Of a stretch of DNA of 64,000 nucleotides, positions 16,321 to 63,346 are shown one piece after another. Under the pieces are notes generated by a model that made no database searches, was not told where the DNA came from, and saw only the letters and a list, made by a program, of their open reading frames with translations. The stretch covers positions 2,728,001-2,792,000 of the forward strand of contig CDRNST010000056.1 of assembly GCA_977016875.1 (NCBI GenBank), read 5' to 3'. A program made the translations under genes and the position numbers. This stretch comes from Pavona decussata. Taxonomy: Eukaryota. Positions within the stretch are counted from its first letter, which is position 1. Each line of letters begins with the position of its first letter.

Positions 16321-16787
16321 AACGATGTGGCAGATTTGAATCGGTCATGGTACCGGGCACTTGGCAATACTATGGGAACAAAGACCGTATTGACATCACT
16401 GTGAACAAAGATTTAATTTTACAGGGACTTTGTTTATGTGGGAGTGAGAACAATGACTACAGTGTTACTTTGGAGATAAAGAATGACAGTAATAATCTGT
16501 GTCTTGCGTCAAATTCAGGAACATTTTCTTCAAAGTTACTGCAATGCAAAAGTAAAAAATATCATGGATTTGAGGTTTTGTTTGATTCTCCAGTTAACTT
16601 GAAAAAGAACGTCAAGTACCAGATAGAAGCGTTAATATCTGGTCCAACATCCGGAAACGGAGAAAGGGGCTCTAACACTGTTCAGTGCGATGGTGTGACA
16701 TTTACATTTTCATCCAGCGCTTTAGGGTCTACGAACGGAACGTCTTCTACGTTAGGCCAATTTCCTGAATTTATTTTCTCGGTGTAG
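16321..16787 (+). pseudogene. BTB-PHR family 5'-truncated fragment (PHR domain only, subtype B)
   Basis: Reads RCGRFESVMVPGTWQYYGNKD...GQFPEFIFSV*. The 3' flank matches that of the copy at 57611. No BTB/BACK sequence lies upstream. Confidence 0.85.
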
Positions 16788-19216
16788 GTCTTAACTTTGC
16801 CATGTCAGCGGACATGATCACAGAATGAAAGATAGAAATACAATACAGGCAATCCAGAAGACCAGAGGCCTCTAAGACATTTTGGGCTCCTGGATTTTGA
16901 TAATACCACAGTTAGCCCAGGCTCTACGATGGCCGGGTGTTGACCTTTGTAAGATAACTCTGCCATCAGCGTCACGTCATTTAAGCATCAAGATAACCAT
17001 GCATTGAGTAGCGGAATCATTAGTGTTTGTATGGGGAAAAGTATCGCATTTGAAGGCAAAATTAGATACTAGTTTTCAATAAAAAGGTTGCACCTGAACT
17101 CCTTTGTAGTTCCTTTTGTGTCTTGCGTGGTTTCTGAATCAGAGCAGCCCTTGGAATTGAACCTCCAAGAAATCGCTTCAAATCGACCCAAAACCGCTAA
17201 GGATATATAATCAGAGAAGTAAGGAAAGAAATACTACACAGGCAATACACAATAGCAGAAGTCTGTTAGGGATTTTGATAGTACAGCACTAATTTATATG
17301 TATATTAAATTCAGAAAAAATGATATATTTTTTCACTTAATAATCGAGAAAGCTTGTATTTTCAGCAGTATCGAAACTGTTACTCTGCCCAGTTAGTTGG
17401 CTGGTACATGTACTTCACAAAGCATAATGAACAGGAACAATAATAATACAGATAAATGGCACAGATAAATTACTAATTAGTCGCAGTAATGAGAATACAT
17501 TGTAAATAAAATTCTTGCAATTCTGTTATGGTGAATTTATGTGCTTTTCCTCTAATCAAAAGCGGAACGAATTTCTCAGTTCACTTCTCGATACACCATG
17601 TAGTTCAGCCACAAGTGTCTTCTCGTCTTTTTCTTATTCTTGACAACAAGAAACTACGAAGGTTCTCGGATCTTATTGTTACTAAATTTTGATAACTTTA
17701 TCGATGAATTCATGAATCATCGTTCGTTCTTACACTAGTGAGATATCCTGATAGTTCACGGTCACTTCCCCCCCCCCCCCCCCCCACCCTCATCCTCTCA
17801 GTGGCGAGGCGGAGGAAAAACGAACCGATTCCGTTCAAACGGTCGCTCCTCAGTATGATCTGACCACTTACTTCTCTTGCTATCTTGGAGTTCTTCTCTT
17901 TCCAAGAACACATCGAGTTTCCGATCTATCAACCTGGTCCAGGGGTTCAGTGAGTTAGGAGTGAGCGGCGAGAACAAAATTGCACTGTGTGTGAAAAATA
18001 AAGGCGACGGAAAATATTAGGAGTGGTTAAGAAACGGGAAGAGACTGGGGAGAGGTGCGACAGATCCAACGGGCAACCAGGCCTCCTCTCGCCTTCTCTC
18101 TCGAGTCTCACGGCTCGTCTTTATCATTCGCTGGCCTCGCAATTTTCTTCGCTCGCCTCCCTAATATCTGAACGCCTGTCAGGATAGGCTACTGCCGATA
18201 ATCAAGGACTGTCAAGTTCGGTTAATTGCCGAGTACGGAGAACTTGATTTAAATATGTCTCTCTCATTGTAAAGAGCTCTATTGGCTTCCTGTCGATCAG
18301 TTTATTGTTAGGGAAGATCCTGCCGCGCGTTTCTTTTAAGCAGTTATTGGGCTTTCACCAAAATACTAAAAGGATATCTTAAAGGGGAGTATACCTACGA
18401 TCCAGTTCTAAACATCTGCTAGCGGTTTCTTCAACTCATGTTAAAACTTACGGCGTTTGCTTATGAGGTATTCTCTGTGGAACAAATACTTGCTTTTGAA
18501 TTCTCTTGCAGAGAAATTCAAGCTCTCTCCCTCATTGTCAACATTTAAAGACCATTAAAACTAAGCTCAAGAGTTACTCCATGTAGACTTTAATCTCCGA
18601 AATTTGTAATTTGTTTCCCGTGCACTCTATACTTCATTCGAGGCCTTTTGAAACGCAGCGTCTTTTGCCACAGCAAAAAAATGCCCCAGATTATTTAGGT
18701 GTCCACGCAACTTGTCAAAGCTTCGCCTCTTGCCAGGAACTCCGAGCGACGGGCAGTGTAGGATATGAAATACTGTAGGACACAGAAGTCGGTCAGTGCT
18801 ACAAAATTGGTACAAAATTGGTAAAGTATTGCTGTACTTCCTTTTTGTTTCTTTATTTGTTCCATTCTTTACCTCTTTACATGCTTATTTCTTTATTTAC
18901 TTCTTTCTTTCTTTCTTTTTACTTTTTTTCTATACTTTTAGCGCCTGCTTCTAAGCTCTTTCGTGGATAAGCAAATTACATTGACATTTTATTTTGTACA
19001 TGGTCTGTAATGGGACAACCAAAATACACCGTCAAATTCGGTGTTCCGGGGTGTTCCGGTGTTCCTGGTTTTAGTACATGCCGTTCCGGTCTGGTGGAAG
19101 CAAAAATATTTGACATTTCTGTTACGCAAATTTAGCCCTTGACGGTAGCTAAGTGTATGCATAATTAGAAGGCTCTGTTCCACACTGCTTGACTGATCAA
19201 CAACTGACTGTTTCAT

Positions 19217-19384
19217 TAGCCTGCGTAGCAAGCGTTCCCGTATGAACGAATTTTTCCGTATTCTGGCCGCACGAAAATTGGGGCGAGACATCCCCGTCCG
19301 CCGATTTTTTGCTCTCGCCCCAATTTTTGCCCAGCCAGAATGCGGGAAAATTCGTTCGTACGGGAACGCTTGCTACGCAAGCTA
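19217..19384. mobile_element. Palindromic MITE, TAG...CTA ends, 9-bp TSD (AcademH-like)
   Basis: TSD CTGTTTCAT at 19208-19216 and 19385-19393; TIR TAGCCTGCGTAGCAAGCGTTCCCGTA. Confidence 0.85.
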
Positions 19385-19471
19385 CTGTTTCATAGGACTG
19401 CCTACAGCTTAAGCCTATAGCAGGCAAGGAGAAAAATATCGTGAATTTTAGAATGAGTTACAATAAGCAAG

Positions 19472-20774
19472 ATGTCTGTACAAGAAAACTGCCAAACAAA
19501 GAGACCCACCATCAGAGAAAGAACCGGGTTTATGCTCAACAACGATCTCTTCAGCGATCGTAAAGTTTGTGGTTTGTAAGATCAAAAAAAAGCGATGATG
19601 AAAGTGAAAGTAAACAAGCGATTCCAGCTCACAAGTTTGTGCTGTCGATTGGCAGTCCTGCATGTTCGAAGCCATGTTTCACGGTGAAGTAGCGGAGACT
19701 AGAGACTCTATTGAACTGCCTGACTGTGAGTACGAGAGTCTGTTAGAATTATTTCGTTTCATATACAGCGATGAAGTGAACTTGAGCGGAAGTAATGTGA
19801 TGGGAGTGTTATACTTGGCTAAGAAGTACATGATGCCTTCACTCGCTGATAAATGCACGGAATATTTGCAAAACAATTTAGATCCGTCAAATGTTTTCAG
19901 CATTCTATCAACGGCTGAATAGTTTGAGGAGAAAGAACTGGTAGATCGATGCTGGGAGGTTGTTGACAGAGAGACAAAAGCAGCAGTGAAATCGGATGGA
20001 TTTGCGACAATTGAGAGATCCTTACTTGAAGCAGTAGTCTCAAGAGATACTCTGACCATTGAAGAGATCGATTTGTTTAAAGCTGTTGATCAGTGGGCAA
20101 CAAAGGAGTGCGAAAAACAAGGTTTAGCAGTAAGCGGTGAACTGAAAAGAAGGATTCTTGGAGAAACGATTATTAAAGCGATCTGTTTTCCACTGATGAA
20201 AGCCAACAAAGAATTTGAAACTGTCGTCCTTGATGCAAGAATTCTTTCTCTACATGAAATAGCCCTGTTTCCAAGTTTTTCAATTCGGTATTGGCTGCTC
20301 CAGTGGGATTCCCAAAGATCAGACGGTTTGCATTGCCTGCTACCGATGTGGTAGATTTGAATCGGTAAATGAGAAGGATTGGTGCTACAGTGAGCGAAAA
20401 GACTTCCTTAATTTTTCGGGTTGACAAAGACCGGCATGTTACATGGACTGTGTTTTTTTTGGCAGTGAGAACAATGACTATGAGGTGATGTTAGAAATAA
20501 AGTATTCCTGTGATAATTCAACTGTGGTGTCCGAGGAAGCAACATTTTATTCAAAGCTGATGCTATATAAAGGCAGTTCTTACTATGGATTTGAAATTCT
20601 CTTTGACTTTGCAGTTTACTTAAAGAAAACCACTGAATACCGAATTGAAGCTTCTGGTCCAAACTCTTGGTTTGGAAATGGTGGCCTTTGTGTGGTTCAG
20701 ATATCTGGTGTGACATTTACTACGGAACCAATTATTCAAATGGTCAGTTTCCTAAATTTCTGTTTTCAGTGTAA
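19472..20774 (+). pseudogene. BTB-BACK-PHR (BTBD3/6-like) pseudogene, PHR subtype A
   Basis: ATG at 19472 is homologous to the other copies. There are several frameshifts and a premature TAG at 19920-19922. It ends at the homologous TAA. Confidence 0.9.
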
Positions 20775-22363
20775 CTTTCTATGTGGACGATTTATTAATG
20801 AAAGCTGTAGGAAAGAAAAAAAAATACTGAAACTGTTGTTATCTGAAGCCGAGAAGAGCACTTAGAACAATCCAGATGGCCTGCTTATATGAAGTCTTTG
20901 TTTAAGCTAAGAGATAACGTAAAAAATCTCAGAGGAGTAAATAAATTAGTTTTGCCTAAGGTTAAAACCACATGACATGGATTGAAATCCGGCCAAAGTA
21001 AGGGTATACTGCTTCCATAGCTAGACAAGCTTACTGTCTATGACTAATATCAAATTATTTAGAAAAGAAGTGCAGAAAATTTTATCTTTCGGATAACTCT
21101 TTCACTTAATTACATATGTACATATTATTTGTTTATTTTCGGCACATTAGCATGTAGTTTGCTTGAGGCCTAAACAGCCTCAATCAAATTCGAGGGTAAA
21201 GTTTCATTTATTCATTCATTCATTGGTTATTTACTTTAATAACTAGGCTCCAGTGTTTTCTGTAGGGAAGCACATCAGTTTTAGGTAACGTTGTAAAAAA
21301 TAAATTAAGTAAAAAAATTGTCTTCTTACAACCTTTACATGTAATATTTTGTATGAACACAGAGAATAAAATATGCCACCAAATTCTGTGAATCTGTTTA
21401 CTGCTTATACTTTTTCCTAAATTCCTAATTAATCTAAAAGGGCGAATACCATATAACAAGGTTTCTTAATAATATCTTTAACGGCCTATATGTTAGTTTT
21501 TTGTTTGCATGAGAATATTCGAATTTTTCAAGAACTGAATAGGCCATCCCTGAGGTCATGAGACTCTGAGTGAGCAACGTGACCTGCACTCTGTCATCAT
21601 AAAGGATCTATGCAAGAAATTGTTTCTGTATTAGAAAAGAGAAAGCTGAACTCATTCGCTCATGTTCCAGATTATCAGTGTAAGCGTCGATTTAAACTCA
21701 AATCTAAAACGTGAACGGGAAAAACCCTCGCAAAACTTTGAGCTTTCCTGATACACTCAGTGAAAACCGTGGGAAATATTCGTTGTAAATCTAGCGGAAC
21801 CCTACTCAACCATGAATCCATTGAGGACACTAAATAACTGACTTCCAAGGATATCGCGGCTCAGCTTGGCCGACTCTCTGCGCGTTCCGAATTCCGAGCG
21901 AATGATCCTAATTTATGCCTATTTATGGCTCTAGTTTCGTTTCCCTCGGAAATTGACCACCGCCGCGCGCGGGAAACACGAACCGACGACCACACGAGAG
22001 GTAACAACACAGTAACAGTCTTAAAAATATTCGGTTTTATTAATTCCATCTTCGCATTCACCATTCGCATTCCGGTTGTGTCCATAACTAGCACAGCTAA
22101 AGGTATAATAAATTTTCCGGGTTTAAAGGTGGCAATAGCTTTGGTAAAAACTGTACAACATATTTGATCAAGTACTTTGGCACGAACATAAAATTGATTT
22201 TAGCAGCGAAACTGACGAGGGTGAGGGGGGTTGTGGGTCACGGCTACAGTCATTTGTTCGCTGCGTAGCGGAGCGAAAGATACCAGGCTGATTTGGCAGT
22301 ATCACATTTAAAAAGTCAGCAAGCAATTACTGCTTGTGTGCATGCGTCCTCCCGCTGCGCTAT

Positions 22364-22578
22364 TTCTCAGAAAACCACGCAATAGAATCCGTTCCGGTCT
22401 GGTGAAACTCAAAGCATTTGATATTTACGTCACGCAAGCTGAGCATGATGAAGTGAGTGTGCGTAAACGGGTGCTGTTCCATACTGCTTGACTGCCAATC
22501 AACAACTATTTGATTGTAGGGCCTACAGCGACCAAGGAGAAGAGATTTCGAAATTTTGGACGCCTTCCAATAGCCAAC
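22364..22578 (+). promoter_or_regulatory. Conserved upstream block of the BTB-PHR genes (GAS-like TTCTCAGAA, CRE-like TTACGTCA; IRF-like GAAAGTGAAA in some copies)
   Basis: The block recurs about 150-220 bp upstream of the ATG in nearly every copy. Motif function is inferred from consensus matches only. Confidence 0.5.
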
Positions 22579-23919
22579 ATGTCTTTTCAAGAAAACTGGC
22601 AAACAAAGAGACCCACCATCAGAGAAAGAACCAAATTTATGATCAACAACGCTCTCTTCAGCGATGTGAAGTTTGTGGTTCGTAAGAAAGATGGTGAAAG
22701 TGAAAGGAAGCAAGTGATTCCCGCTCACAAGTTTGTGCTGTCGATTGGCAGTCCTGTGTTTGAAGCCATGTTTTACGGTGAGCTAGCGGAGACTAGAGAC
22801 TCTATTGAACTTCCTGACTGTGAGTACGAGAGTCTGTTGGAGTTGTTTCGTTACATGTACAGCGATGAAGTTAATTTGAGCGGAAGTAATGTGATGGCGG
22901 TGTTATACTTGGCTAAGAAGTACATGGTCCCCTCACTCGCTGATAAATGCACGGAATATTTGCAAAAAGAATTAGATCCGTCAAATGTTTTCAACATTCT
23001 GCCAACGGCTGAAAAGTATGAGGAGAAAGAGCTGGTGGATCGATGCTGGGAGGTTGTTGACAAAGAAACAAAAGCGGCAGTGAAATCGGATGGATTTGCG
23101 ACAATTGAGAGATCCTTACTCGAAGCAGTAGTCCCAAGAGATACTCTGACCATTGAAGAGATCGATTTGTTTGAAGCTGTTGATCAGTGGGCAGCAAAGC
23201 AGTGCGAAAAACAAGGTTTAGCAGAAAATGGTGAACAGAAAAGAAGGATTCTTGGCGAAAAGATTATCAAAGCTATTCGCTTTCCATTGATGAAACAGGA
23301 CGAATTTGCCTCCGCTGTCCTTGATGCAAGCATTCTTACTCCAAATGAAGTGGTGACCTTTTTTAAATTCTTCAGTTCACCATTAACTTCTCCAGTGGGA
23401 TTTCCAGATACCAGGCGTTCAGGAACAAGAGCCAAGACTACAGTCCTTTACCGATGTGGCAGATTTAAATCGAAGTCATGCCTTGTCTGGGATTATACTC
23501 GTGGGTATAAGGACTTCCTTGGTGTTACTGTGAACAAAGATATAACGTTGCATGGACTTTGTTTATTTGGCAGCAAGAATAATAGCTACACTGCTTCTTT
23601 AGAGATAAAAGATGCCAGAAACAATTCTTGCCTTGTCTCAAAGTCAGGAACATTTTCTTCAAACCTTCTGCAATTTAAACTTTCTAACAATCATGGATTT
23701 GAGGTTTTGTTTGATTCTCCACTTAACTTGAAAAAGAACATAAAGTACCAGATAGAAGCGTTAATATCTGGTCCGTCATCTGAGATAGGAGAAAATGGCT
23801 CCAATACTGTTCAGTGCGGTGGTGTGACATTTACATTTTCAGTCTGCACTCTAGGAAGGATTACTAACGGAACATCTCCCACAGGAGGACAATTTCCTGA
23901 ATTTCTGTTCTCGGTGTAG
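22579..23919 (+). CDS. BTB-BACK-PHR domain protein (BTBD1/2/3/6-like), 446 aa, intact, intronless
   Basis: Motifs: FSDVKFVV, IPAHKFVLSIGSPVFEAMFYG, ELFRYMYSDEV, VLYLAKKYMVPSL (BTB); RDTLTIEEIDLF..W, IRFPLM (BACK); RCGRF..W.Y..D...NGT...GQFPEFLF (PHR). The true ATG is inferred from paralogs. Confidence 0.95.
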   Translation: MSFQENWQTKRPTIRERTKFMINNALFSDVKFVVRKKDGESERKQVIPAHKFVLSIGSPVFEAMFYGELAETRDSIELPDCEYESLLELFRYMYSDEVNLSGSNVMAVLYLAKKYMVPSLADKCTEYLQKELDPSNVFNILPTAEKYEEKELVDRCWEVVDKETKAAVKSDGFATIERSLLEAVVPRDTLTIEEIDLFEAVDQWAAKQCEKQGLAENGEQKRRILGEKIIKAIRFPLMKQDEFASAVLDASILTPNEVVTFFKFFSSPLTSPVGFPDTRRSGTRAKTTVLYRCGRFKSKSCLVWDYTRGYKDFLGVTVNKDITLHGLCLFGSKNNSYTASLEIKDARNNSCLVSKSGTFSSNLLQFKLSNNHGFEVLFDSPLNLKKNIKYQIEALISGPSSEIGENGSNTVQCGGVTFTFSVCTLGRITNGTSPTGGQFPEFLFSV

Positions 23920-37233: not shown

Positions 37234-38578
37234 ATGTCTGTCCAAGAAAACTGGCAAACAAGGAGAAACACCATCAGAGAAAGAACCAAGTTTATGCTCA
37301 ACAATCATCTATTCAGCGATGTAAAGTTTGTGGTTCGTAAGAGCGATGGCGAAAGTGAAAGTAAGAAAGTGATTCCAGCTCACAAGTTTGTACTGTCGAT
37401 TGGAAGTCCTGTATTTGAAGCCATGTTTTACGGTGAGCTAGCGGAGACTAGAGACTCCATTGAACTGCCTGACTGTGAGTACGAGAGTCTGTTGGAATTG
37501 TTTCGTTACATGTACAGCGATGAAGTGAATTTGCGCGGAAGTAATGTGATGCGAGTGTTTATATACTTGCATGGCGAAGAAATATATCGTGCCTTCACTC
37601 GCTGAGAAATGCAGCGAATATTTGCAAAATAATTTAGATCCTTCAAATGTTTTCAGCATTCTACCAACGGCTAAAAAGTTTGAGGAGAAAGAACTGGCGG
37701 ATCGATGCTGGAATGTTGTTGACAAGGAGACAGAAGCGGCAGTGAAATCGGATGGATTTGCGATAATTGACAGATCCTTACTTGAAGCAGTAGTCTCAAG
37801 AGATACTCTGACAATTGAAGAGATCGATTTGTTTAAAGGTGTTGAGTAGTGGGCAACAAAACAATGTCAAAAGCAAGGCTTATCAGCAGATGGTGGATCG
37901 AAAAGAAAGATTTTGGGTGAGCGGATTATTAAATCAATACGCTTTCCAGTAATGAAACAAGAAGAATTCGCAGCTGTTGTCATTGACTCCAAAATTCTGA
38001 CCCCAGATGAAATATCCACCTTTTTCAAGTTTTTCAGTTCGGCTTTAACTTCTCCAGTGGGATTTCCAGAAACCAGGCGTTCAGGAACAAGAGCCAAGAC
38101 TGCATGTGGCAGATTTAAATCGGTGTCAGTCGGCGATTCCTGGGGCTATGATAGTGGGCGTAAGGACTTTCTTGGTGTTACTGTGGACAGAGAGATAACG
38201 TTGCATGGACTTTGTTTTTGTGGCAGCGAGAATAAAAGCTACACTGTTTCTTTAGAGATAAAAGATGCCAGAAACAGTTCCTGCCTTGTCTCAAAGTCAG
38301 GAACATTTTCTTCAAACCTTCTGCAATATGAACTTACTAATTATCATGGATTTGAGGTTTTGTTTGACCGTCCCGTTATTTTGAAAAAGAACACTAAGTA
38401 CCAGATAGAAGCGTTAATATCTGGTCCTGCATCTTGGAGGGGTACAGGTGGCTTTAGTACCGTGCGATGTACTGGTGTGACATTTACATTTTCAACCAGT
38501 GATTCAAGGCCTTCTAACGGAACAAGTTGTACAATGGGACAATTTCCAGATTTTCTTTTTTCCCTTAAGTTAAGTTAG
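37234..38578 (+). pseudogene. BTB-BACK-PHR pseudogene, PHR subtype C
   Basis: Frameshift at about 37560-37572 and a TAG at 37847-37849; otherwise full length. Confidence 0.9.
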
Positions 38579-41470: not shown

Positions 41471-41684
41471 TAAAGCACCAATGTCATACTGCTTGACTGA
41501 TCTGACAGCTGATTACTAGGAGTGCCCTCACTGGCAACTTCATAAATTTTTAGAAGATTTTAAAGACTGGTTCAACTTGTCGAAGTATTGCATTGAATCT
41601 GTCCTGTCATGTCCTGTCTTGTCCTGTACTGTATTAAACTCAACTCAACTCAGGCAACTCATACAATTCAATTGCATACAGGCA

Positions 41685-42007
41685 TAGACTGTTCACAGCC
41701 CCCCTATTTTTCCGTGGGATCCTCGAGACCGGTAGGCTTCGATGGAACCGCCGCCATCTTTGTTTATATAAGCGAACGCGATCTGGGGAGAGTGTCTAAA
41801 CTACCGAGGGGAGCGGGAGTGGGTGTTATTATAGTGGGAGAGATCGCGCTCGCTTATACCGAAGCGTACCGGTCTGGAGAATCCCACGGAAAAATAGGGG
41901 GGCTGTGAACAGTAGTTTAGACACTCTCCCCGGATCGCGCTCGCTTATACCGAAGCGTACCGGTCTCGAGAATCCCACGGAAAAATAGGGGGGCTGTGAA
42001 CAGTCTA
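41685..42007. mobile_element. MITE with TAG...CTA ends and 9-bp TSD (AcademH-like), with an internal duplication of the right arm
   Basis: TSD ATACAGGCA at 41676-41684 and 42008-42016; TIR TAGACTGTTCACAGCCCCCCTATTTTTCCGTGGGAT; empty site in the paralog at about 27800. Confidence 0.85.
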
Positions 42008-42649
42008 ATACAGGCACCAAGACAAGCACTTATATTGTAGTTGATAGTACATCGAGTGCGTGGCACAAATCGTCAAAATGGCGTTTAAACCAACCAGGAC
42101 ACACCAAGGGACAATGAAGTAAAAAAGTAAGAAGGCTTTATTTCGTATTATTTTCAGTGTCTTTCCGGCGACTCAATCCAGCGAGAGTCTCAATAATATG
42201 GCTTATGCGAACTTCTGCAATTTCAATCAGTTAATTATCAGTGCACATTTCACGTATAAACGGCTCCGAAATCTGGCTCTTAAACACGCAAGAAAACTGA
42301 GGAAACCACAAAGTAATACAATAAGTACATTGTATTTTTTCAATTACTCTAGACTTACCACTTCCATTTACAACTTCAAATCAGCTGTAAATAACCTTGT
42401 TTCACACTACGATTGGGCAACCTGTCGTGTGACCACTTGAATGTAAAATATACTTTAGTTTAGCGCTATTATCCTGCAGCGCTATTTCTCAGAAAACCAC
42501 GTAATAAAATCCGTTCTGATCTGGTGAAAGTGAAAACATTTGATATTTACGTCACGTAAACTGAGCATATGAGTATGCGCAAACGGGCGCTGTTCCATAC
42601 TGCTTGATCAACAACTGTTTGATAGGAGTGCCTACAGCGACCAACGAAC

Positions 42650-43597
42650 ATGTCTGTAAAAGAAAACTGGCAAACAAAGAGACCCACCATCAGAGAAAGA
42701 ACCAAGTTTATGCTCAACAACCATCTCTTCAGCGATGTGAAGTTTGTGGTTCGTAAGAACGATGGTGAAAGCGAAAGTATGCAAGTGATTCCAGCTCACA
42801 AGTTTGTGTTGTCGATTGGCAGTCCTGTGTTTGAAGCCATGTTTTACGGTGAGCTAGCGGAGACTAGAGACTCTATTGAACTGCCTGACTGTAAGTCCGA
42901 GAATCTGTTGGAGTTGTTTCGTTACATGTACAGTGATGAAGCGAATTTGAGCGGAAGTAATGTGTTGGGAGTGTTATACTTGGCTAAGTAGTACATGGTG
43001 CCGTCACTCGCTGATAAATGCACGGAATATTTGCAAAAACATTTAGATCCGTCGAATGTTTTCAGCATTCTGCCACCGGCTGAAAAGTATGAGGAGAAAG
43101 AGCTGGTGGGTCGATGCTGTGAAATTGGATGGATATGCGACAATTGAGAGATCCTTACTTGAAGCAGTAGTCTCAAGAGATACTCTGACCATCCAAGAGA
43201 TCGATTTGTTTAAAGCTGTTAATCAGTGGGCAACAAAGGAATACGAAAAGCAAGGTTTAGCAGCAAATGGTGAACTGAAAAGAAGGATTCTTGGCGAAGA
43301 GATTATTAAGGCGATCCGCTTTCCATTGATGAAACTGGACGAATTTGCCTCCGCTGTCCTTGATGCAAGTATTCTTACTCCAAATGAAGTGGTGACCTTT
43401 TTTAAATTCTTTAGTTCATCATTGACTTCTCCAGTGGGATTTCCAGATACCAGACGGTCAGGAACAAGAGCCAAGACTGCAGTCCTTTACCGATGTGGCA
43501 GATTTGTATCGAAGTCAGGCGATCCTTGGAACTATATTAGTGGGAATAAGGACTTTCTTGGTGTTACTGTGGACAGAGATATAACGTTGCATGGACT
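42650..43597 (+). pseudogene. BTB-BACK-PHR pseudogene, 3'-truncated
   Basis: TAG at 42989-42991 and a deletion near 43118. Homology stops at ITLHGL, where Penelope-associated sequence begins. Confidence 0.9.
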
Positions 43598-45325
43598 CAG
43601 TCTCACACGCTTTTCTGTCACTTTATCTTACTCGGCCCAATGATGTGCGAGCAGTACTGACCCATTTAGCAGTTAACGTCGGTTCACAGCCGTTGCTGAG
43701 GAAGAACAGCACAGACAGCACCAACTTGAAAGTGTCCGTGTCTCCCATCGGTTTTTTCCAGGACTAGACAGTGGGAGTGCCGATGGGGAGCAAACTTTGG
43801 ACCCAATTATTTATTTTGTGTCATTGGCCACATTGAGAATTAAATCTTTAATCAGTATGAAGGAAGCGTACTGGAGTTAGTAAACGCTTCATCGGCGACA
43901 TCGTGAGAGCCACCTGCAGTACCATGGAAGAGATCGAAGACTCTGCTAATTTTGTCAATGGTTTTGGTCCCAGTCTTGAATTCACTTGGGCATATCTGAT
44001 GTACAACAATCTTTTTTTAATCTTTACATGAAACCATCTTCTGATCGCCTCTTCACCTGCATCCACTATAAAGAAATTGACACACATACGTAGCTAAATA
44101 ATTCATCCTCTCACCCTGTGAAGACTGTGAAGTGTAAGAACTCTATTTCTTATAAACAGTTTCTCTGTTTGAGACGCAACTGCAGTGACGAGTAAGACGG
44201 CTTAAAAAAAAAACAAAACAAAAATAAAAACGAGGAGGCGTCTACTTTTGTATTTCTCAGGATCCGTGGCTACCTGGCAACACAAGTAATAAAATTGAAC
44301 ACGCCCGGAACAAGGTACTGATGTTAAGTATCAGCTACCCCTCGTGAAATCATCTTTTAGAAAGTACGATCAAAACTGAAAACCAACCAGCAATCCCTTG
44401 GTGCTGACATACCATACTTCCAACATATACTTGTTAAGCCATCACGACCAATAACTTCCATCTGACACGGCAGCTATTTTCTAACCTGACGTATTTTATG
44501 CGCATATCGTCGCGATGGAAACCAACGTGACTCTCTGGTCAGGCGCAATATCAACACCACAGCTGCGCCTGTCGGATGATGATCGCGGTACGTTCCCATG
44601 TGGCTATTCACGGTGCAATACTTGCGTTTACACCAACGCATTGCCCACTATTAATGAGTTGCATGTGACGTCAAGGCGGCCAAGTTGGTGGACAGGAACA
44701 ATGAGATTTTTCGCCTCTGGGAGTTACCTTTCATTTTTATGCAAACTTTGTGAAAAAATTTTCTTTTGTTTTGTCCACCAACATGGCAGTGTTGTAAACC
44801 ACCTATAGACACTCCCGGCGGACGCGCCCATTTTCATCCATTCTAGATATACCTGTACCAGCAACAACGCACTGTACCTTATTAAGGGATACGCTTATAT
44901 TAAACGCTGATACTATTGTTTACATTGGAGAGACGGGAAGACGCCTTGAGGACAGATTCAGAGAGCATCTACACTCTACAAGACCGTCCTAACACAGAAC
45001 TGCCTGTGAGCCGATTCTTTACATCACCCGGTCACAGAATTGACGAAATGCTGTGTCCGTTGTCTGTTCCGGTTTTTGAAATAAAACTAGACCTATGCCG
45101 TTTCGAAGCTTTCCTGATACTCCGACATCAGATCCTCCAGCCAGGAGGGCTCAATGCTTACTCTGGAGCACAGTGAGCGCCGCGCGTTGATATAACGTAT
45201 GTTTTGAAACGTTTTCACTCATTTTATTCAAAATCTCTCACGCGCGCGCTTTTAATTTTCACCAGTTGCATTTTTTCACCACTGAAGACTCGAAGCAGTA
45301 GCGGGGATCAGAAACGTTTAGTAAA
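43598..45325 (+). mobile_element. Degenerate Penelope-like retroelement (RT C-terminus + GIY-YIG remnants); more deleted paralog at about 53718-54830
   Basis: Cross-frame remnants include NFVNGFGPSLEFTW, CKNSISYKQFLCLRRNCSD, IPLVLTYH, GTFPCGYSRCNTC, YTCTSNN.LYLI, GETGRRLEDRFREHL and PVSRFFTSPGH. Confidence 0.75.
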
Positions 45326-46290
45326 TATCTTTTTCAGCGCAGGTATCTACAGTCAAAACAATTTTAACATATTCAACCCGCCTTTTTCTCGAACAATTGC
45401 GCTACACAGTACAATTGTAATCTACTTTTAGGCTTCCCAATTTGCTTACATGCATTTCAGTTATTTTTTTAACGCTCATTCATATAAACTGAGTATCAGG
45501 TTTTCTGCGGTTCCTTCTCTTTTCAATAGATCAGGACACTTCACAAGAGACATAAACCCATACTTCTGTAATTATGGCCCACTAAAAACACCTTGCGTCG
45601 GAAAAGCATGCCGGACTAGTCGAAGTGCTGCATTAAACCTGTCCTGCCGGCTATATATACCTTGTTTTCCCCGTGGTCCCCTGCATTCAAAATAAGGCGG
45701 TGCATCTTGTACAATTTAATTGCATACAACACCAAAAGTTCTTATTTCATAGTCGATATTTCCTCGGATGGACCCAAATCTACAAAATGACGTTTAAAAC
45801 GACCAGGACACACGAAGGGACAATAAATTAAAAGTAACAAGGCCTTATTTCGTATTATTTTCAGTTTTACTTTTGGGATACTGATATGGCTTATGACTGA
45901 GCCTCTATTAATTCCACACAATTTTCTGCACATGAAGATAAGTACGTTTTTTGTCAGTTACTCTAGATATATACCACTACGATCTACAGCTTCAAACCAG
46001 CTGTAAACTGATTAGCTTGTTTCACGTTCTACGATTGGGCCGCGGCCTATGGTGTCCTGCCGCTGCGCTATTTCTCAGAACCACGCAATAAAATCCGTTC
46101 CGGTCTGGTGAAAGTGAAAGAATTTGATATTTCTGTCACGCAAGCTGAGCATGGTGATGTGAGTATGCGTAAACGGGCGCTATTCATGTTCGATACTGCT
46201 TGACTGCCGATCAACAACTGTTTGATAGGAGTGCCTACCGAGACCAACGAGAAGAGATTTCGAAATTTTGGACGCCTTCCAATAGCCAAC

Positions 46291-47605
46291 ATGTCTGTCC
46301 AAGAAAACTGGCAAACAAAGAGGCCCACCATCAGAGAAAGAACCAAGTTTATGGTCAACAACCATCTATTCAGCGATGTGAAGTCAGAGCGATGGTGAAA
46401 GTGAAAGTAAGCAAGAGATTCCCGCTCACAAGTTTGTGTTGTCGATTGGCAGTCCTGTGTTTGAAGCCATGTTTTACGGTGAGCTAGCAGAGACTAGAGA
46501 CTCTATTGAACTGCCTGACTGTGAGTACGAGAATCTGTTGGAATTGTTCCGTTACATGTACAGCGATGAACTGAATTTGAGCGGAAGCAATGTGCTGGGA
46601 GTGTTATACTTAGCGAAGAAATACATGGTGCCTTCACTCGCTGATAAATGCACGGAATACTTGCAAAATAATTTAGATCCGTCAAATGTTTTCAGCATTC
46701 TACTAACGGCTGAAAAGATTGAGGAGAAAGAACTGGCGGATCGATGCTGGAAGGTTGTTGACAAGGAGACAAAAGCGGCAGTGAAGTCGGATGGATTTGC
46801 GACAATTGAGAGATCCTTACTCCAAGCAGTAGTCTCAAGAGATACACTGACCATCGAAGAGATCGATTTGTTTAAAGCTGTTGATCAGTGGGCAACAAAG
46901 GAGTGCGAAAAACAAGGTTTAGCAGTAAATGGTGAACAGAAAAGAACGATTCTTGGAGAAGAGATTATTAAAGCGATCCGTTTTCCAAGGATGAAAGAAA
47001 AAGAATTTGCCGCTGACGTCCTTGACACAAAAATTCTTACTCCAGATGAAATAATCGCCTTCGTTAAATTTTATAATTCAACGTTAACCTTTCCAGTGGG
47101 ATTTTCAGAGTCCAGGCGTTCTGGTCCCCTTGATTATCGTTACCGATGTGGTAGGTTCGAGTCTGCAGGTGCGAATCGTTGGGGGTACGGTGGTAAAAAA
47201 GACTTTCTAAACTTTTCTGTGGACAAAGGCATCATGTTACACGGACTGTGTTTGTTTGGCAGCGAGAACAATGACTACAAGGTGATATTAGAAATAAAGG
47301 ATTGCAGTAATAATTCTACTGTAGTTTCCAAAGTAGGAACGTTTTCTTCAAAACGTATGCAATATAAGCACAGTCATTATTTCGGATTTGAAATTCTGTT
47401 TGACTCTGCCATTGATTTAAAGAAAACCACTGACTATCAAATCGAATCCTTAATATCCGGTCCAAGCTCTTGGGGAGGGAGTGATGGCCTATGTGCGGTC
47501 CAGATCTCTGGTGTGACGTTTAGTTTTTCTACCAGTGTAGGGAAACGAGGTAACGGAACAAATTATTCAAATGGTCAGTTTCCTGAATTTCTGTTTTCAG
47601 TGTAA
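46291..47605 (+). pseudogene. BTB-BACK-PHR gene with a single early frameshifting deletion (about 46385), PHR subtype A
   Basis: AAGTCAGAGCGAT replaces AAGTTTGTGGTTCGTAAGAGCGAT. The remaining 389-codon frame is intact. Confidence 0.85.
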
Positions 47606-49463
47606 GTTTCTATTACGGCGGACGATTAATTAAAGAAAGCCGCAGGAAAGAGAAAAATACTGAAACCGTTTTCGTTTCCTTCCCTTCTTGAATAACGAAG
47701 GACGAAGCACACTTAGAACGATCCAGAATATTTACTTTGGTAACTAGGCTCCACTGTTTTTTATAAGTAAACACATTTTAGGTTAGGTTACTCTGTAAAA
47801 AGGACGAGTTCTTTTTTGAATATACAGCAAAATAATGTCTGCCATTTAAGATGTAAGAATCATCGCCTGGAACTTCAGTTTTGTTGAAGATCAAGAGAAT
47901 TTTTCATTGAAATTTGACTGGGGTTTTGCCATGCTGAATTAATGATTTAATATTCTTGCTTATACTAAAAATATCTTAAAAACTTTATGACGGAAAAAAA
48001 GCGTTCTCAAAAAAGAGCAAATCGTAGTTACTAGTTTCCGAGGTAGTATAAACCACTGTTATCACTGTTTTATTATAGCTATATTTAAAAAAAAATAGTT
48101 GTATAAAAAGTGTGAAGAGATTTTGATAATAAAATATAACTATTGTCTAATTGCACCTTTACATGTACTGAATGAAAACAAAGAAGAAAATATACACCCA
48201 AATTCAATGAATCTGTCTTCTGCTCATCTCGCCTAAAGTCCTAACTAATCTGAAAGGACGGACTGCCTTTGTTAATCATTTCTTTAACGGCCTATTTGTT
48301 TTTTCTTTACATGAGAATATTCGAGTATTCAAGAACCGACGCCATCACTAGGGGCATCAGTGACTCTGAGTATTTATGCAACGTAACCATTCTGCCATCT
48401 GAAGGATACAACTGCAAGAGAGGATGAACTAGCTCATCCTCTCTTAATGAAATACGCAATTCAATTTCAATTTCTTTCTCCTTGAGAAAAACTTTATTCG
48501 CTCATGTGTGTATAGGCATCGATTTAGACTCAAATTTAAAACGTGAAGGGGAATAAATATTCGTTGTAAATTTAGCAAAACCCTGTTCAACGAACCATGG
48601 GAGGACACTAAACAAACTGACTCCCAAGGATATTGCTCAGCTTGGCCGACTCTTTGCACGTTCCGATTTCCAAGCGAATGATCCTAATTATAATTGATGC
48701 CTTTTTCAAGACGGTAGTTTTAATCCCGGCAGTGTTGTTATGTTATGACAGAGCTGAGATATTTCTCTTCGTGTCCATTGGTAACTGACCACTGCCGCAC
48801 GCGGGATCGGAAACGCGTAACGACGAACACGCCATAACAAATAGGAGTGGTGCAAAAAAATTGGGGCTGATAGCGGGTTAGTAAGAGTCTTGAAAAATAA
48901 TTATTTGGTTTTATTTAGTTTCGACTTCGCATTAATACTTCCAGTTGTGTCTACTCAATAACTAGTATAGCTAAAGGTATATTAAATTTTCCGGGTTTAA
49001 AGGGGGCAATAACTGTGGTGAAAACTGTACTTTTGCTTAAACAGAAAATTGATTTTAGTAGCGAAACTGACGAGGGTGGGGAGGGAAGGGAGATGGGTCA
49101 CAGCTTCACTACTTGCAACATTTTGCTGTAGTTACAGTCGATACAAAAACAAGGAAGTCATTTGTTCGCTGTGTAGCGGAGGGAACGATACCAGGCTGAT
49201 TTGGTAGTATCACTGCTTGTGTGCGTGCGTTCTCCCGCTGCGCTATTTCTCAGAAAACCACGCAATAAAATTCGTTCCGGTCTGGTGAGAGTAAAAACAT
49301 TTGATATCTCAGTCACGCAAACTGAGCATGGTGATGTGAGTATGCGTAAACGGGCGCTGTTCCATACTGCTTGACTGCCGATCAACAACTGTTTGTTAGG
49401 AGTGCCTACAGCAACCAAGAAGAAGAGATATCGTGAACTTTTGGACGCCTTCCTACGACCAAC

Positions 49464-50786
49464 ATGTCTGTACAAGAAAACTGGCAAACAAAGAGGCCCA
49501 CCATCAGAGAAAGAACCAAGTTTATGCTCAACAATCATCTATTCAGCGATGTGAAGTTTGTGGTTCGTAAGAGCGATGATGAAAGTGAAAGTAAGCAAGT
49601 GATTCCAGCTCACAAGTTTGTGCTGTCGATTGGCAGTCCTGTGTTTGAAGCCATGTTTTACGGTGAGCTAGCGGAGACTAGAGACTCTATTGAACTGCCT
49701 GACTGTGAGTACGAGAGTCTGTTGGAGTTTTTTCGTTACATGTACAGCGATGAAGCGAGTTTGAGCGGAAGTAATGTGATGGGAGTGTTGTATTTGGCGA
49801 AGAAATACATGGTGCCTTCACTCGCTGATAAATGCACGGAATATTTGCAAAGTAATCTTGCTCCGTCAAATGTTTTCAGCATTCTACCAACGGCTGAAAA
49901 GTATGAGGAGAAAGAGCTGGTGGATCGATGCTGGAAGGTTGTTGACAAGGAGACAAAAGCGGCAGTGAAATCGGATGGATTTGCGACAATTGAGAGATCC
50001 TTACTTGAAGCAGTAGTCTCGAGAGATACTCTGACCATTGAAGAGATCGACTTGTTTAAAGCTGTTGATCAGTGGGCAACAAAGGAGTGCGAAAAACAAG
50101 GTTTAGCAGAAAATGGTGAACAGAAAAGAAAGATTCTTGGAGAAGAGATAATAAAAGCGATCCGTTTTCCAGTGATGAAAGAAAACGAATTTTCAGCTGT
50201 TGTCCTTGATGCAAAAATGCTTTCTCCGGAAGAAGTGATCATCTTTTTTAAGTTTTTCAATTCAACATTGGCTACTCCAGTGGGATTTCCAGATACCAGG
50301 CGGTCAGGAACAGTCCTTTACCGATGTGGCAGATTTGAATCGATGTCAGTCGATCTCTGGCGCTATAATAGTGAGTACAAGGACATTCTTGATTTTACTG
50401 TAGACAAAGATATAACGTTCCATGGTGTTTGTTTGTGTGGCAGCGAGAGTAATAGCTATTCTGTTTCTTTAGAGACAAAAGATGCCAGTAACAATTCCTG
50501 CCTTGTCTCAAAGTCAGGAACATTTTCTTCAAAACTTCTACAATATAAACTTACTAACTATTATGGGTTTGAGGTTTTGTTTAACCGTCCCGTTCACTTG
50601 AAAAAGAACACTAAGTACCAGATAGAAGCTTTAATATCTGGTCCATCATCTGGGAGGGGTACAGGTGGCTTAAGTACCGTGCTATGTACTGGTGTGACAT
50701 TTACATTTTCAACCAGTGATTCAAGTCCTCTTCACGGAACAAGTTGTGCGAGAGGACAATTTCCAGAGTTTCTTTTTTCCCTTTAA
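49464..50786 (+). CDS. BTB-BACK-PHR domain protein, 440 aa, intact, intronless
   Basis: Complete ORF with all motifs. Confidence 0.95.
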   Translation: MSVQENWQTKRPTIRERTKFMLNNHLFSDVKFVVRKSDDESESKQVIPAHKFVLSIGSPVFEAMFYGELAETRDSIELPDCEYESLLEFFRYMYSDEASLSGSNVMGVLYLAKKYMVPSLADKCTEYLQSNLAPSNVFSILPTAEKYEEKELVDRCWKVVDKETKAAVKSDGFATIERSLLEAVVSRDTLTIEEIDLFKAVDQWATKECEKQGLAENGEQKRKILGEEIIKAIRFPVMKENEFSAVVLDAKMLSPEEVIIFFKFFNSTLATPVGFPDTRRSGTVLYRCGRFESMSVDLWRYNSEYKDILDFTVDKDITFHGVCLCGSESNSYSVSLETKDASNNSCLVSKSGTFSSKLLQYKLTNYYGFEVLFNRPVHLKKNTKYQIEALISGPSSGRGTGGLSTVLCTGVTFTFSTSDSSPLHGTSCARGQFPEFLFSL

Positions 50787-61421: not shown

Positions 61422-62008
61422 TTAATACTTCCGGTTGTGTCCATAACTAGTATATATAGCTAAAGGTATAATAAATTTCCGGGGTTTAAAGGGGGCAATA
61501 TCTGTTGTGAAAACTGTACAACGTATTTGATCAAGTTCTTTTGCTTAAATATAAAATTGATTTTAGTAGCGAAACTGACGAGGGTGGGGAGGGAAGGGGG
61601 GAGGGTCACAGCTTCACTACTTGCAACATTTTGCTGTAGTTACAGTCGATACAAAAACAAGGAACTCATTTCTTCGCTGTGTAGCGATGCGAACGATACC
61701 AGGCTGATTTGGCAGTATCACATTTAAAAAGTCAGCAACGAATTACTGCTAGCTTGTGTGCGTGTGTTCTCCCGCTGCGCTATTTTCCAGAAAAACACGC
61801 AATAAAATTCGTTACGGTCTGGTGAAAGTGAAAACATTTGATATTTACGTCACGCAAACTAAGCATGGTGATGTCAGTATGCGTAAAAGGGCGCTGTTCG
61901 ATACTGCTTGACTGCCGATCAACAGCTGCCGGAGTGTTCGATAGGATTGCCTACAGCGACCAAGGAGAAGAGATATCGTGAAGTTTCGGACAATTTCCTA
62001 TAACGAAC

Positions 62009-63346
62009 ATGTCTGTACAAGAAAACTGGCAAACAAAGAAACCCACCATCAGGGAAAGAACCACGTTTATGCTCAACAATCATCTATTCAGCGATGTGAG
62101 GTTTGTGGTTCGCAAGAGCGATAGTGAAAGCGAAAGTAAGAAAGTGATTCCAGCTCACAAGTTTGTGCTGTCGATTGGCAGTCCTGTGTTTGAAGCCATG
62201 TTTTACGGTGAGCTAGCGGAGACTAGAGACTCTATTGAACTGCCTGACTGTGAGTACGAGAGTCTGTTGGAGTTGTTTCGTTACTTGTACAGCGATGAAA
62301 TTAATTTGAGCGGAAGTAATGTGATGGCGGTGTTATACTTGGCTAAGAAGTACATGGTGCCCTCACTCGCTGATAAATGCACAGAATATTTGCAAGAAAA
62401 ATTAGATCCGTCAAATGTTTTCAACATTCTGCCAACGGCTGAAAAGTATGAGGAGAAAGAGCTAGTGGATCGATGCTGGGAGGTTGTTGACAAAGAAACA
62501 AAAGCGGCAGTGAAATCGGATGGATTTGCGACAATTGAGAGATCGTTACTTGAAGCAGTAGTTTCAAGAGATAGTCTGACCATTGAAGAGATCGATTTGT
62601 TTAAAGCTGTTGATCAGTGGGCAACAAAGGAGTGCGAAAAACAAGGTTTGGCAGTAAATGGTGAACAGAAAAGAAGGATTCTTGGAGAAAAGATAATAAA
62701 AGCGATCCGCTTTCCAGTGTTGAAACAGGAAGAGTTTGCCTTTGCTGTCCTTGATACAAGCATTCTTACTCTAAATGAAGTGGTGACCTTTTTTAAATTC
62801 TTTAGTTCATCATTGACTTCTCCAGTGGGATTTTCAGATACGAAGCGGTCAGGAGCAAGAGCCAAGACTGTGGTCATTTCCCGATGTGGCAGATTTGAAT
62901 CGATGTCAGTCGATAGCTGGGGCTATAGTAGTGGGTATAAAGACATTCTTGATCTTACTGTGGACAAAGATATAACGTTGCATGGTCTTTGTTTATGTGG
63001 CAGCGAGAATAATAGCTACACTGTTTCTTTAAAGATAAAAGATGCCAGTAACAATTCTTGCCTTGATTCAAAGTCAGGAACATTTTCTTCAAACGTTCTG
63101 CAATATAAACTTGCTAACTATCAGGGATTTGAGGTTTTGTTTGATCGTCCCGTTAAATTGAAAAGGAACACTAAGTACCAGATAGAAGCGTTAATATCTG
63201 GTCCATTATCTGGAAGGGGTGCAGGTGGCTTTAGTACCGTGCTATGTACTGGTGTGACATTTAGATTTTCAACCAGTTATTCAAGTCCTGATTACGGAAC
63301 AAGTTGTACGATGGGACAATTTCCAGAGTTTCTTTTTTCCCTTTAA
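62009..63346 (+). CDS. BTB-BACK-PHR domain protein, 445 aa, intact, intronless, PHR subtype C
   Basis: Complete ORF with all motifs. Confidence 0.95.
   Translation: MSVQENWQTKKPTIRERTTFMLNNHLFSDVRFVVRKSDSESESKKVIPAHKFVLSIGSPVFEAMFYGELAETRDSIELPDCEYESLLELFRYLYSDEINLSGSNVMAVLYLAKKYMVPSLADKCTEYLQEKLDPSNVFNILPTAEKYEEKELVDRCWEVVDKETKAAVKSDGFATIERSLLEAVVSRDSLTIEEIDLFKAVDQWATKECEKQGLAVNGEQKRRILGEKIIKAIRFPVLKQEEFAFAVLDTSILTLNEVVTFFKFFSSSLTSPVGFSDTKRSGARAKTVVISRCGRFESMSVDSWGYSSGYKDILDLTVDKDITLHGLCLCGSENNSYTVSLKIKDASNNSCLDSKSGTFSSNVLQYKLANYQGFEVLFDRPVKLKRNTKYQIEALISGPLSGRGAGGFSTVLCTGVTFRFSTSYSSPDYGTSCTMGQFPEFLFSL

Follow-up and report, generated by a model that had tools for sequence, protein, structure and literature searches.

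The 64,000-nt window analysed here (Pavona decussata GCA_977016875.1, CDRNST010000056.1:2,728,001-2,792,000; copy positions are window-relative) holds members of a tandem family of BTBD6-like BTB-BACK-PHR (BBP) genes in a stony coral, intronless and evolving by birth and death, and the family is probably a diversified set of Cullin-3 receptors in which the members of the array share a chassis and differ in their PHR heads. An initial annotation of this DNA had described an array with a constant BTB and a hypervariable PHR domain and had read it as a repertoire for recognizing and degrading foreign proteins; that description is partly confirmed for the window, and the interpretation as a whole is partly supported.

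Organization of the array

There are eleven BBP places in the window (16323-63346; tblastn with an intact copy as query), all on the + strand. Three are intact, with coding frames that run unbroken from ATG to stop, so the coding part contains no intron; the remaining eight are dead, being frameshifted, truncated or reduced to fragments as judged from tblastn and nucleotide alignment. The count, common strand and intronless coding part of the copies first described therefore hold, but only three are intact: copy 3 (g2750w; 22579-23919, 446 aa), which is the reference for every residue number given here, copy 9 (g2777w; 49464-50786, 440 aa) and copy 11 (g2790w; 62009-63346, 445 aa).

The dead copies are degraded to different extents. 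Copy 1 (16323-16787) is 5'-truncated to a PHR domain only, equivalent to codons 292-447 of the reference copy (Pfam PHR E 1.8e-31), with a 146-aa open frame starting at the ATG at 16347, and copy 5 (31071-31241) is a fragment with the final ~57 residues of the PHR domain. Copies 2, 4, 6 and 7 are pseudogenes: copy 2 (19472-20773) has many frameshifts and two in-frame stops, copy 4 (28500-29840) has 11-nt and 4-nt insertions that shift the frame in BTB/BACK together with five internal stops, copy 6 (37234-38562) has a 4-nt insertion at 37568 and a TAG at codon 203, and copy 7 (42650-43597) has a TAG at codon 114 and a 32-nt deletion, and is truncated past codon 327. The N-terminus of copy 8 (46291-47605) is broken by an 11-nt deletion at codon 31, with the remainder open as a 389-aa frame from 46436; its PHR domain is of a divergent 'type B' that groups with a sister cluster, C84. 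Copy 10 (57611-59116) has a 395-aa open frame (57611-58798) that includes BTB, BACK and two-thirds of PHR, and a disrupted C-terminus, the last 51 residues lying ~180 nt downstream at 58967-59116.

An intergenic assembly gap (31572-32044) is touched by no BBP copy, the nearest ending at 31241 and the next beginning at 37234; the sequences on either side of it match paralogous spacers in the same order, the matching points there being 50-100 nt apart, and the open reading frames called across it are artefacts of the N run. It is followed by a solo upstream region (32045-33221, + strand) that is homologous to the ~1.1 kb preceding copy 3 (21252-22353) and has no gene after it.

The window sits inside a ~258-kb cluster that contains at least 36 copies, of which (~36) 10 are intact. 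Genome-wide there are at least 98 full-length matches and at least 150 PHR loci (150 of 150 scored candidates are above the Pfam cut-off), which are mostly intronless and arranged in tandem clusters with many pseudogenes; intact frames are retained in dozens of copies. One-to-one collinearity of the cluster with a related assembly was looked for and is absent. Metazoan genomes typically carry 4-7 BBP genes (PMC1257465), against which this is the large lineage-specific tandem expansion that had been proposed.

Domain architecture and Cullin-3 docking

The predicted three-domain architecture is borne out in the intact copies, with Pfam matches to BTB (PF00651; E 1e-26 in all three), BACK (PF07707; E 2e-10 to 2e-11, above the cut-off) and a C-terminal PHR domain (PF08005; E 1e-27 to 1e-29). 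The closest solved BTB chain is human BTBD6 (2vkp, E 4e-29), the BACK domain is alignable through those of KLHL3 and KLHL11, and an AF2 model of the PHR domain (pLDDT 88-96 across most of its length) has the BTBD2 PHR domain (3no8, TM 0.87) as its top Foldseek match.

The residues of a phi-x-E motif are presumably Cul3 contacts, as in the KLHL3, KLHL11 and SPOP structures. In the coral proteins this motif is L69-A70-E71, opposite M-S-E in the alignment with KLHL3 (4hxi, crystallised with Cul3) and L-R-E in that with KEAP1; its conservation across 75 homologues is at least 90%, and the helical 3-box/BACK region comes after it, in keeping with the adaptor features originally assigned. By homology, each BBP protein would act as a dimer that brings substrates to a Cullin-3 RING ligase, and we infer that the window proteins bind Cullin-3: the BTB domain would dimerise and dock through the phi-x-E motif and the following helices, and the BACK domain would position the C-terminal PHR beta-sandwich. 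The PHR loops are assumed to be the substrate binders; the case of zebrafish Btbd6, described below, counts against this.

For two window paralogues, the predicted BTB dimer scores 0.67 (best control, 0.01), a value that 51 of 78 solved complexes reach, as do 2 of 108 mismatched pairs, with at least 93% contact agreement between runs and a partner pLDDT of at least 82; because similar BTB dimers have already been solved, the score shows likeness and not binding. Heterodimers between paralogues could multiply receptor variety. The predicted interface is highly conserved, 18 of its 26 positions being identical throughout the two clusters, which would also suit paralogues specialised for endogenous roles, either serving host substrates by cell type or stage, or capturing a BTB-containing substrate through the BTB domain while the PHR domain sets localisation or partners. 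Vertebrate BBP proteins have developmental roles, and zebrafish Btbd6 recruits its substrate Plzf through the BTB and not the PHR domain, both domains affecting nuclear localisation (bioRxiv 10.1101/575910). We regard such specialisation as very improbable here, as conserved host substrates are not expected to drive repeated nonsynonymous change in loops, nor to give rise to ~150 copies that turn over quickly from one related genome to another.

Homogenization of the 5' half

The front and back halves of the genes have different histories. Synonymous divergence (dS) is 0.205 in BTB, 0.285 in BACK and 0.867 in PHR, and pS, taken over 30-codon windows, is 0.10-0.15 for the BTB core versus 0.36-0.53 over most of PHR. 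The BTB region had been described as almost invariant even at synonymous sites; this is overstated, as pS there is ~3-5-fold below that of PHR and not zero. Trees of the 5' and PHR parts reject each other (AU p <=5e-4), recombination is found by the PHI test, the nearest counterpart of the copy 3 PHR domain in the related assembly sits on a different 5' half, and the same PHR types persist in two genomes. From the incongruent trees and the AU and PHI tests it follows that the synonymous uniformity of BTB reflects gene conversion or recombination and gives no ground for assuming special constraint. The 'constant BTB' is thus largely concerted evolution, in which gene conversion or recombination homogenises promoter, BTB and BACK within the cluster.

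The unit that is kept alike would extend from about -230 to the BACK/PHR junction and would owe its uniformity to purifying selection acting alongside gene conversion or unequal recombination; with homogenisation of this kind within a cluster, the promoter, dimer interface and ligase dock would be common to all copies. The PHR domains would escape it and persist as old, distinct lineages. Domain-wide omega in the window cluster is 0.33 for PHR versus 0.27-0.35 for BTB-BACK, so the contrast in amino-acid variability is mostly one of higher total divergence. Older divergence accounts for much of the PHR 'hypervariability' of the window cluster, dS also being ~4-fold higher.

Variation and selection in the PHR domain

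The PHR loop strings quoted in the initial annotation are all present in the window, and the three segments to which variation was assigned (segment 1 following CGRF, segment 2, and segment 3 preceding GQF) are real; there is, however, a fourth variable segment at residues 346-353, with an indel-rich linker ahead of CGRF, and segment 2 is on average purifying (omega 0.66-0.78), site 400 alone standing out. Segment 3 has an omega of 1.4-1.5 in three independent groups, and the PHR framework is purifying (0.22-0.66). Whole-PHR omega is 1.28 when copy 3 is compared with its closest counterpart in the related assembly.

Site tests used self-implemented codon models (F3x4, naive empirical Bayes, M7/M8 with scaled M0 branch lengths) and not PAML or HyPhy. 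The excess of nonsynonymous change foreseen in the PHR loops is strong in the sister cluster C84, where the M1a/M2a likelihood-ratio statistic (LRT) is 54.6 (p 1e-12), M7/M8 54.6 and M8a/M8 50.3, with 14.5% of sites at omega 6.6, no recombination signal in the PHI test of the PHR domain (p 0.27) and an LRT of 7.6 in the control 5' half. It is only moderate in the window cluster, where the PHR LRT is 15.05 (p 5e-4), M7/M8 19.6 and M8a/M8 10.7; LRTs for this cluster run from 12 to 20 (p 3e-3 to 6e-5) and may be inflated by the recombination that PHI detects there (p <=0.001), and the control 5' half is also weakly positive (M7/M8 LRT 13.7, M8a/M8 p 0.018). Restricting the PHR tests to gap-free columns leaves the result unchanged, C84 included, and all 22 genes together give an LRT of 77 (branch lengths fixed at M0 estimates).

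Ten of the 12 selected sites are in loops, though strand makes up 65% of the PHR domain. The selected sites are located in segments 1 and 3, at the one segment-2 site (400) and in the fourth loop; sites 303 and 305 are interleaved with W304 and Y306, which are invariant and of buried type, and sites 422 and 436 are selected in both clusters. Positive selection at a minority of PHR loop sites is supported, strongly in C84 and only moderately, with a weak signal in the control half too, in the window cluster.

The same data could come from neutral turnover of a recombination-prone, redundant repeat, with loops drifting under relaxed constraint, conversion keeping the front half alike, and omega above 1 arising from recombination, misalignment of indel-rich loops or multi-nucleotide changes. 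Eight dead copies among eleven would suit such turnover, as would the recombination signal and the weakly 'significant' control half of the window cluster, and the four variable segments pooled have an omega of ~1.0-1.1, near neutral, with dS raised too, which could reflect misalignment or micro-conversion. The C84 statistic, on the other hand, was obtained against models that already include a neutral class, in a cluster free of PHI signal, and is unchanged on gap-free columns. The recurrence of sites 422 and 436 in both clusters, the purifying framework, the dozens of intact frames and the persistence of PHR types in two genomes further argue against drift, and we consider this explanation quite improbable. 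Under the preferred reading of a diversified receptor family, the PHR domain would evolve quickly at a handful of exposed loop residues, near W304/Y306, at 349-353, at site 400 and at 422-436 ahead of GQF, and the family would amount to a large number of ligase receptors that share a chassis and differ in their binding heads.

Upstream regions and expression

The block from -230 to -1 of copy 3 (22349-22578, + strand) is common to all intact cluster genes, with 82-91% identity and a lower value for one divergent gene. It is a candidate core promoter/5'UTR and belongs to the homogenised unit. It contains a GAS-like palindrome, TTCTCAGAA (at 22364), which is present in 8 of 10 intact cluster genes, as well as an ISRE-like GAAAGTGAAA and a CRE-like TTACGTCA, both at fixed positions.

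Metatranscriptome contigs span 49464-50837, which includes the whole of intact copy 9 with its PHR part, and the intergenic interval 48122-48897 has zero contig cover in four of four RNA runs. The contigs are short and match at 97% identity or more, so some of them could stem from a close paralogue; with this qualification, expression, anticipated for the intact copies, is seen for one of them.

The promoter motifs bear on a possible role in immunity or symbiont control, in which PHR heads would send foreign (viral, bacterial or dinoflagellate) proteins to Cullin-3 degradation under STAT/IRF-type induction. The large tandem expansion, pseudogene turnover and loop-confined positive selection would fit such a role, and nematode MATH-BTB and F-box families have the same pattern of expansion, turnover and selection. 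BTBD6 is also among the expanded 'immune' families of a symbiotic vent snail (PMC7895826). The GAS site is not enriched in the window, however (24 seen versus 20.5 expected), and is missing from the C84 cluster, and the promoter motifs were copied along with the duplicated block, so that they amount to one observation and not ten. A literature search found no link between coral BBP genes and immunity. What ties the family to pathogens or symbionts is analogy and a weak promoter hint, and we hold this role to be rather unlikely. Its fullest form, a germline-encoded intracellular repertoire of ~150 Cullin-3 adaptors with a conversion-kept chassis, selected PHR heads and heterodimers, induced through STAT/IRF-type sites and degrading viral, bacterial or algal-symbiont proteins, is unlikely.

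Comparison with related families

The coral proteins are most like the vertebrate Cullin-3 adaptors BTBD6, BTBD3, BTBD1 and BTBD2, with the same three-domain order, a BTB domain nearest to BTBD6, whose phi-x-E motif is an identical L-A-E in the alignment, and a PHR fold nearest to BTBD2. They differ in that such genes number 4-7 in vertebrates and other metazoans (PMC1257465), whereas the coral has at least 150 PHR loci that are in tandem, mostly intronless and endowed with fast-changing loops. The PHR domains of MYCBP2/Highwire/RPM-1 (3gbw, 3hwj) have the same fold (Foldseek E 1e-12, TM 0.80-0.84 by target), but are single-copy and conserved, sit inside a giant RING ligase and not in BTB adaptors, and have not diversified.

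The MATH-BTB and F-box families of Caenorhabditis and plants combine a constant cullin dock with a variable substrate-binding module, evolve by birth and death and have positive selection confined to the binding domain. The coral family resembles them in its constant dock and variable module, tandem expansion, birth-and-death turnover and, as seen in C84, positive selection in the putative binding domain; the Caenorhabditis and plant expansions have been noted before (PMC1257465). It differs in lineage (Scleractinia), in that the variable module is a PHR beta-sandwich C-terminal to BTB-BACK, and in that the constancy of its dock is kept by gene conversion reaching into the promoter.

Organization of the array

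The window contains eleven places with BTB-BACK-PHR (BBP) genes, all on the forward strand from 16323 to 63346, as located by tblastn with an intact copy as the query. Three copies are intact (copy 3, 22579-23919, +, 446 aa; copy 9, 49464-50786, +, 440 aa; and copy 11, 62009-63346, +, 445 aa), and in these the BTB (PF00651), BACK (PF07707) and PHR (PF08005) domains score well over the Pfam cut-offs. The copy at 46291-47605 (+) has an 11-nt deletion close to its start, that at 57611-58798 (+) is without the PHR end, four copies are broken by frameshifts and/or stops, and two places hold fragments. The genes begin with a conserved Met and then an NWQT motif; their unbroken coding frames imply that the coding parts are intronless. 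The initial annotation described a same-strand intronless array, and this organization stands, but only three of the eleven places are intact. The nearest named proteins are from the stony corals Pocillopora, Stylophora, Oculina and Montipora, and the Atlas clusters for the family are mainly cnidarian.

An assembly run of Ns (31572-32044) lies in a spacer and is reached by none of the BBP copies. Its left (31335-31571) and right (32045-32671) flanks match the same paralogous spacers with order kept, and in these spacers the points matching the two flanks are 50-100 nt apart. We rejected the ORFs at 31521-32154 (-) as genes, as they are artefacts of the N run. Directly after the gap, 32045-33221 (+) is a copy of about 1.2 kb of the region upstream of copy 3 (21252-22353) with no gene behind it, and looks like the remnant of a deleted unit.

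Other elements are also present in the window. An intact 473-aa ORF at 12734-14155 (+), inside the BBP cluster, has THAP, HTH_Tnp_4 and DDE_Tnp_4 domains (Pfam), which identify it as a Harbinger/PIF-like transposase; next to it, a 166-aa ORF at 14334-14834 (-) encodes a YqaJ-like viral recombinase/exonuclease domain (E 4e-12) and probably belongs to a mobile element. Two further ORFs (4714-5781, - and 8303-8758, -) have weak, sub-cut-off matches to rhodopsin-type 7TM receptors, and may be a GPCR gene or pseudogene amid the BBP copies.

Family size and relatives

The cluster holding the window array extends from 2,622,570 to 2,880,551 of contig C56, of which the window covers 2,728,001-2,792,000, and has at least 36 BBP copies, with ten fully intact and five nearly intact in the 222 kb that were read; the census is based on 222 of 320 kb and a genome-wide match list. 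There are other clusters on contigs C84, C129, C45 and C36. Across the 602 Mb genome at least 98 full-length BBP matches were scored among 471 first-look candidates, and all 150 of the PHR candidates scored are over the Pfam cut-off. Metazoan genomes have been reported to have 4-7 BBP genes each (Stogios et al., PMC1257465), and at least 150 PHR loci thus indicate a very large lineage-specific expansion. The window array is part of a real, very large tandem family of putative Cullin-3-type adaptors.

A similar array, with genes that do not correspond one-to-one, occurs in a related assembly (ENA ERZ25073751, about 90-94% nucleotide identity). At the left edge of the cluster there is a longer gene (C56:2622570-2624366, 598 aa) with a counterpart in contig L045 of the related assembly (L045:3293-5212, 639 aa), where it has a Pfam BTB match and a weak BACK match but no PHR; with 94% nucleotide identity between the two assemblies it is far better conserved than the array genes. 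PHR matches are also found in open frames of 168-174 aa on contigs C169 (~1.03-1.88 Mb), C133 and C192 of this genome, and these may represent either PHR-only genes or the PHR exons of genes that are spliced, in contrast to the intronless BBP type of about 450 aa.

We found no paper on BBP or BTBD6 expansions in corals or Scleractinia, and BTB goes unmentioned in the paper on the Stylophora genome. In a symbiotic vent snail, BTBD6 is one of the 'immune' families listed as expanded (PMC7895826), and in Orbicella the genes listed near outlier SNPs include one that is BTBD6-like (PMC12630909).

A homogenized front half

The pattern of a constant BTB and a variable PHR described in the initial annotation is correct, but the constant half has a different cause. 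Among the ten intact genes of the cluster, dN and dS are 0.055 and 0.205 for BTB (omega, the dN/dS ratio, 0.27), 0.099 and 0.285 for BACK (omega 0.35), and 0.285 and 0.867 for PHR (omega 0.33), such that the PHR is about four times as diverged at silent sites too and its mean omega is not raised. Constraint on synonymous sites of the BTB was considered and rejected in favor of gene conversion, because the trees of the two halves are incongruent and because a non-coding block of about 230 nt upstream of the ATG is homogenized as well (82-91% identity in all intact genes except one divergent gene). The tree of codons 1-268 and that of the PHR are each rejected on the other partition by the AU topology test (p 5e-4 to 1e-83). 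For example, the 'type B' PHRs, carried by the window copy at 46291-47605 and three more genes of the cluster, join the PHRs of the sister cluster C84 with 100% bootstrap, whereas the front halves (BTB and BACK side) sort by cluster. Similarly, the nearest cross-genome relative of the copy 3 PHR is in gene L045:18145-19485, the front half of which is from another group. For the front halves, the PHI test reports recombination in each of the two clusters, and homology breaks into classes beyond the upstream block and past the stop codon. The constant BTB is thus the product of concerted evolution together with purifying selection.

Evidence for diversifying selection on the PHR domain

We fitted codon models with our own program (GY94, F3x4; M0, M1a, M2a, M7, M8 and M8a; naive empirical Bayes posteriors). 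The signal is strong in the seven C84 genes, where the likelihood-ratio test (LRT) of M1a against M2a for the PHR gives 54.6 (p 1e-12), with 14.5% of sites at omega 6.6, and M8a against M8 gives 50.3; the result is the same on gap-free columns, and the LRT of the control front half is 7.6. Diversification of the PHR as proposed in the initial annotation is borne out in C84 by M7 against M8 (54.6), with no PHI recombination signal in the PHR (p 0.27). The ten intact genes of the window's cluster give an LRT of 15.05 (p 5e-4; 8.5% of sites at omega 3.1), M7/M8 of 19.6 and M8a/M8 of 10.7, but we grade these as suggestive only since PHI is positive and the control front half also reaches 13.7 for M7/M8. 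The LRT is 12.0 for seven and 35.5 for eleven genes of the type-A clade, and 77 for all 22 genes pooled, a fit in which branch lengths were held at their M0 estimates. Taken at the family level, the codon models are strong evidence for positive selection on the PHR; for the window's own cluster the evidence is moderate.

The selected sites (copy 3 numbering) are 303, 305, 307 and 310, around the invariant W304 and Y306; 349-353 and 389, in C84; 400; and 422, 425, 427, 428, 434 and 436, before the GQF motif, with 422 and 436 selected in both clusters. In the PHR model, strands make up 65% of the domain, yet ten of twelve selected sites lie in loops; alternation along individual strands is an unreliable guide in this domain, as two strands are twice the usual length. 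Simple counting gives omega 1.4-1.5 in three groups for segment 3 (the variable segment before GQF), 0.7-1.4 for segment 1 (after CGRF), 0.66-0.78 for segment 2, and 0.22-0.66 for the PHR framework. Pooled-segment dN/dS was rejected as sole proof of selection, being about 1.0-1.1 and consistently above 1 in segment 3 only. Compared with its nearest cross-genome counterpart, copy 3 has a whole-PHR omega of 1.28, with 34 differences that are nonsynonymous and 8 that are synonymous. The BBP genes are, on this sequence evidence, a conversion-homogenized chassis with diversifying PHR loops.

Predicted protein and dimer

The closest solved BTB is that of human BTBD6 (2vkp), and the front half aligns with the Cullin-3 adaptors KLHL3, KEAP1, KBTBD2 and KLHL11. 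L69-A70-E71, at least 90% conserved in 75 homologues, is aligned to M-S-E of KLHL3 and L-R-E of KEAP1, phi-x-E residues that we take to be the Cullin-3 contact in those structures. In the AF2 model the PHR is confident (pLDDT 88-96 over most of the domain) and the monomeric BTB poor; the top Foldseek matches of the PHR are the BTBD2 PHR (3no8, TM 0.87) and the MYCBP2 PHRs. For the front halves of two different paralogues from the window, a dimer is predicted at a score of 0.67 (best control 0.01), a mark met by 51 of 78 solved complexes and two of 108 mismatched pairs, with contact agreement between runs of at least 93% and partner pLDDT of at least 82; as similar dimers are already solved, it shows likeness only. 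Eighteen of the 26 interface positions are invariant in both clusters, making heterodimers between paralogues plausible. Zebrafish Btbd6 recruits Plzf via BTB heterodimerisation (preprint 10.1101/575910), and for this reason substrate binding by the PHR is an assumption.

Expression and upstream sequences

RNA contigs match 49464-50837 (copy 9), including the PHR part, at 97% identity or more. They derive from two metatranscriptomic RNA-Seq runs, both carrying the label 'coral metagenome', and from two more runs presumed to be RNA; the intergenic stretch 48122-48897 has zero contig cover in all four. The shared front half, to which paralogues can contribute contigs, has far deeper cover. These data support transcription of the family, and copy 9 is probably transcribed. 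A contig joint at 49939/46767 was rejected as a transcript feature, as it looks like a chimera of paralogous 5' halves. Just 3' of copy 9, 50838-51031 and 51226-51400 have cover of about 1900-5100 in the two metatranscriptomes, absent from the other two runs, and may represent a repeat, or else an element that any organism in the sample expresses highly.

The shared upstream block opens with a GAS-like palindrome, TTCTCAGAA, which is present in eight of the ten intact genes of the cluster at about -217 from the ATG (22364-22372, 49247-49255 and equivalents). After it come an ISRE-like site, GAAAGTGAAA, near -177 and a CRE-like site, TTACGTCA, near -155. Since the sites are inherited with the block, they amount to a single observation. 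The window has 24 GAS sites where 20.5 are expected, which is no enrichment; one is conserved per promoter block, and the C84 promoters have no GAS site, with TATAAA at -118 instead. We treat these motifs as a lead, not as evidence of immune control.

Significance

Corals host intracellular algae, and to our knowledge have no adaptive immunity. A family of about 150 BBP ubiquitin-ligase receptors, sharing one dock but carrying heads that evolve fast, would offer a concrete and testable candidate for how coral cells discriminate and dispose of foreign proteins. The mosaic shows cleanly how concerted evolution can act on one half of a gene and diversification on the other, and the map of selected sites points to PHR loops worth mutating to learn what the domain binds. 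As a diversified repertoire of cullin adaptors, the family would be a third independent example, after the MATH-BTB and F-box families of nematodes and the F-box families of plants, differing from these in that it rests on the poorly understood PHR domain.
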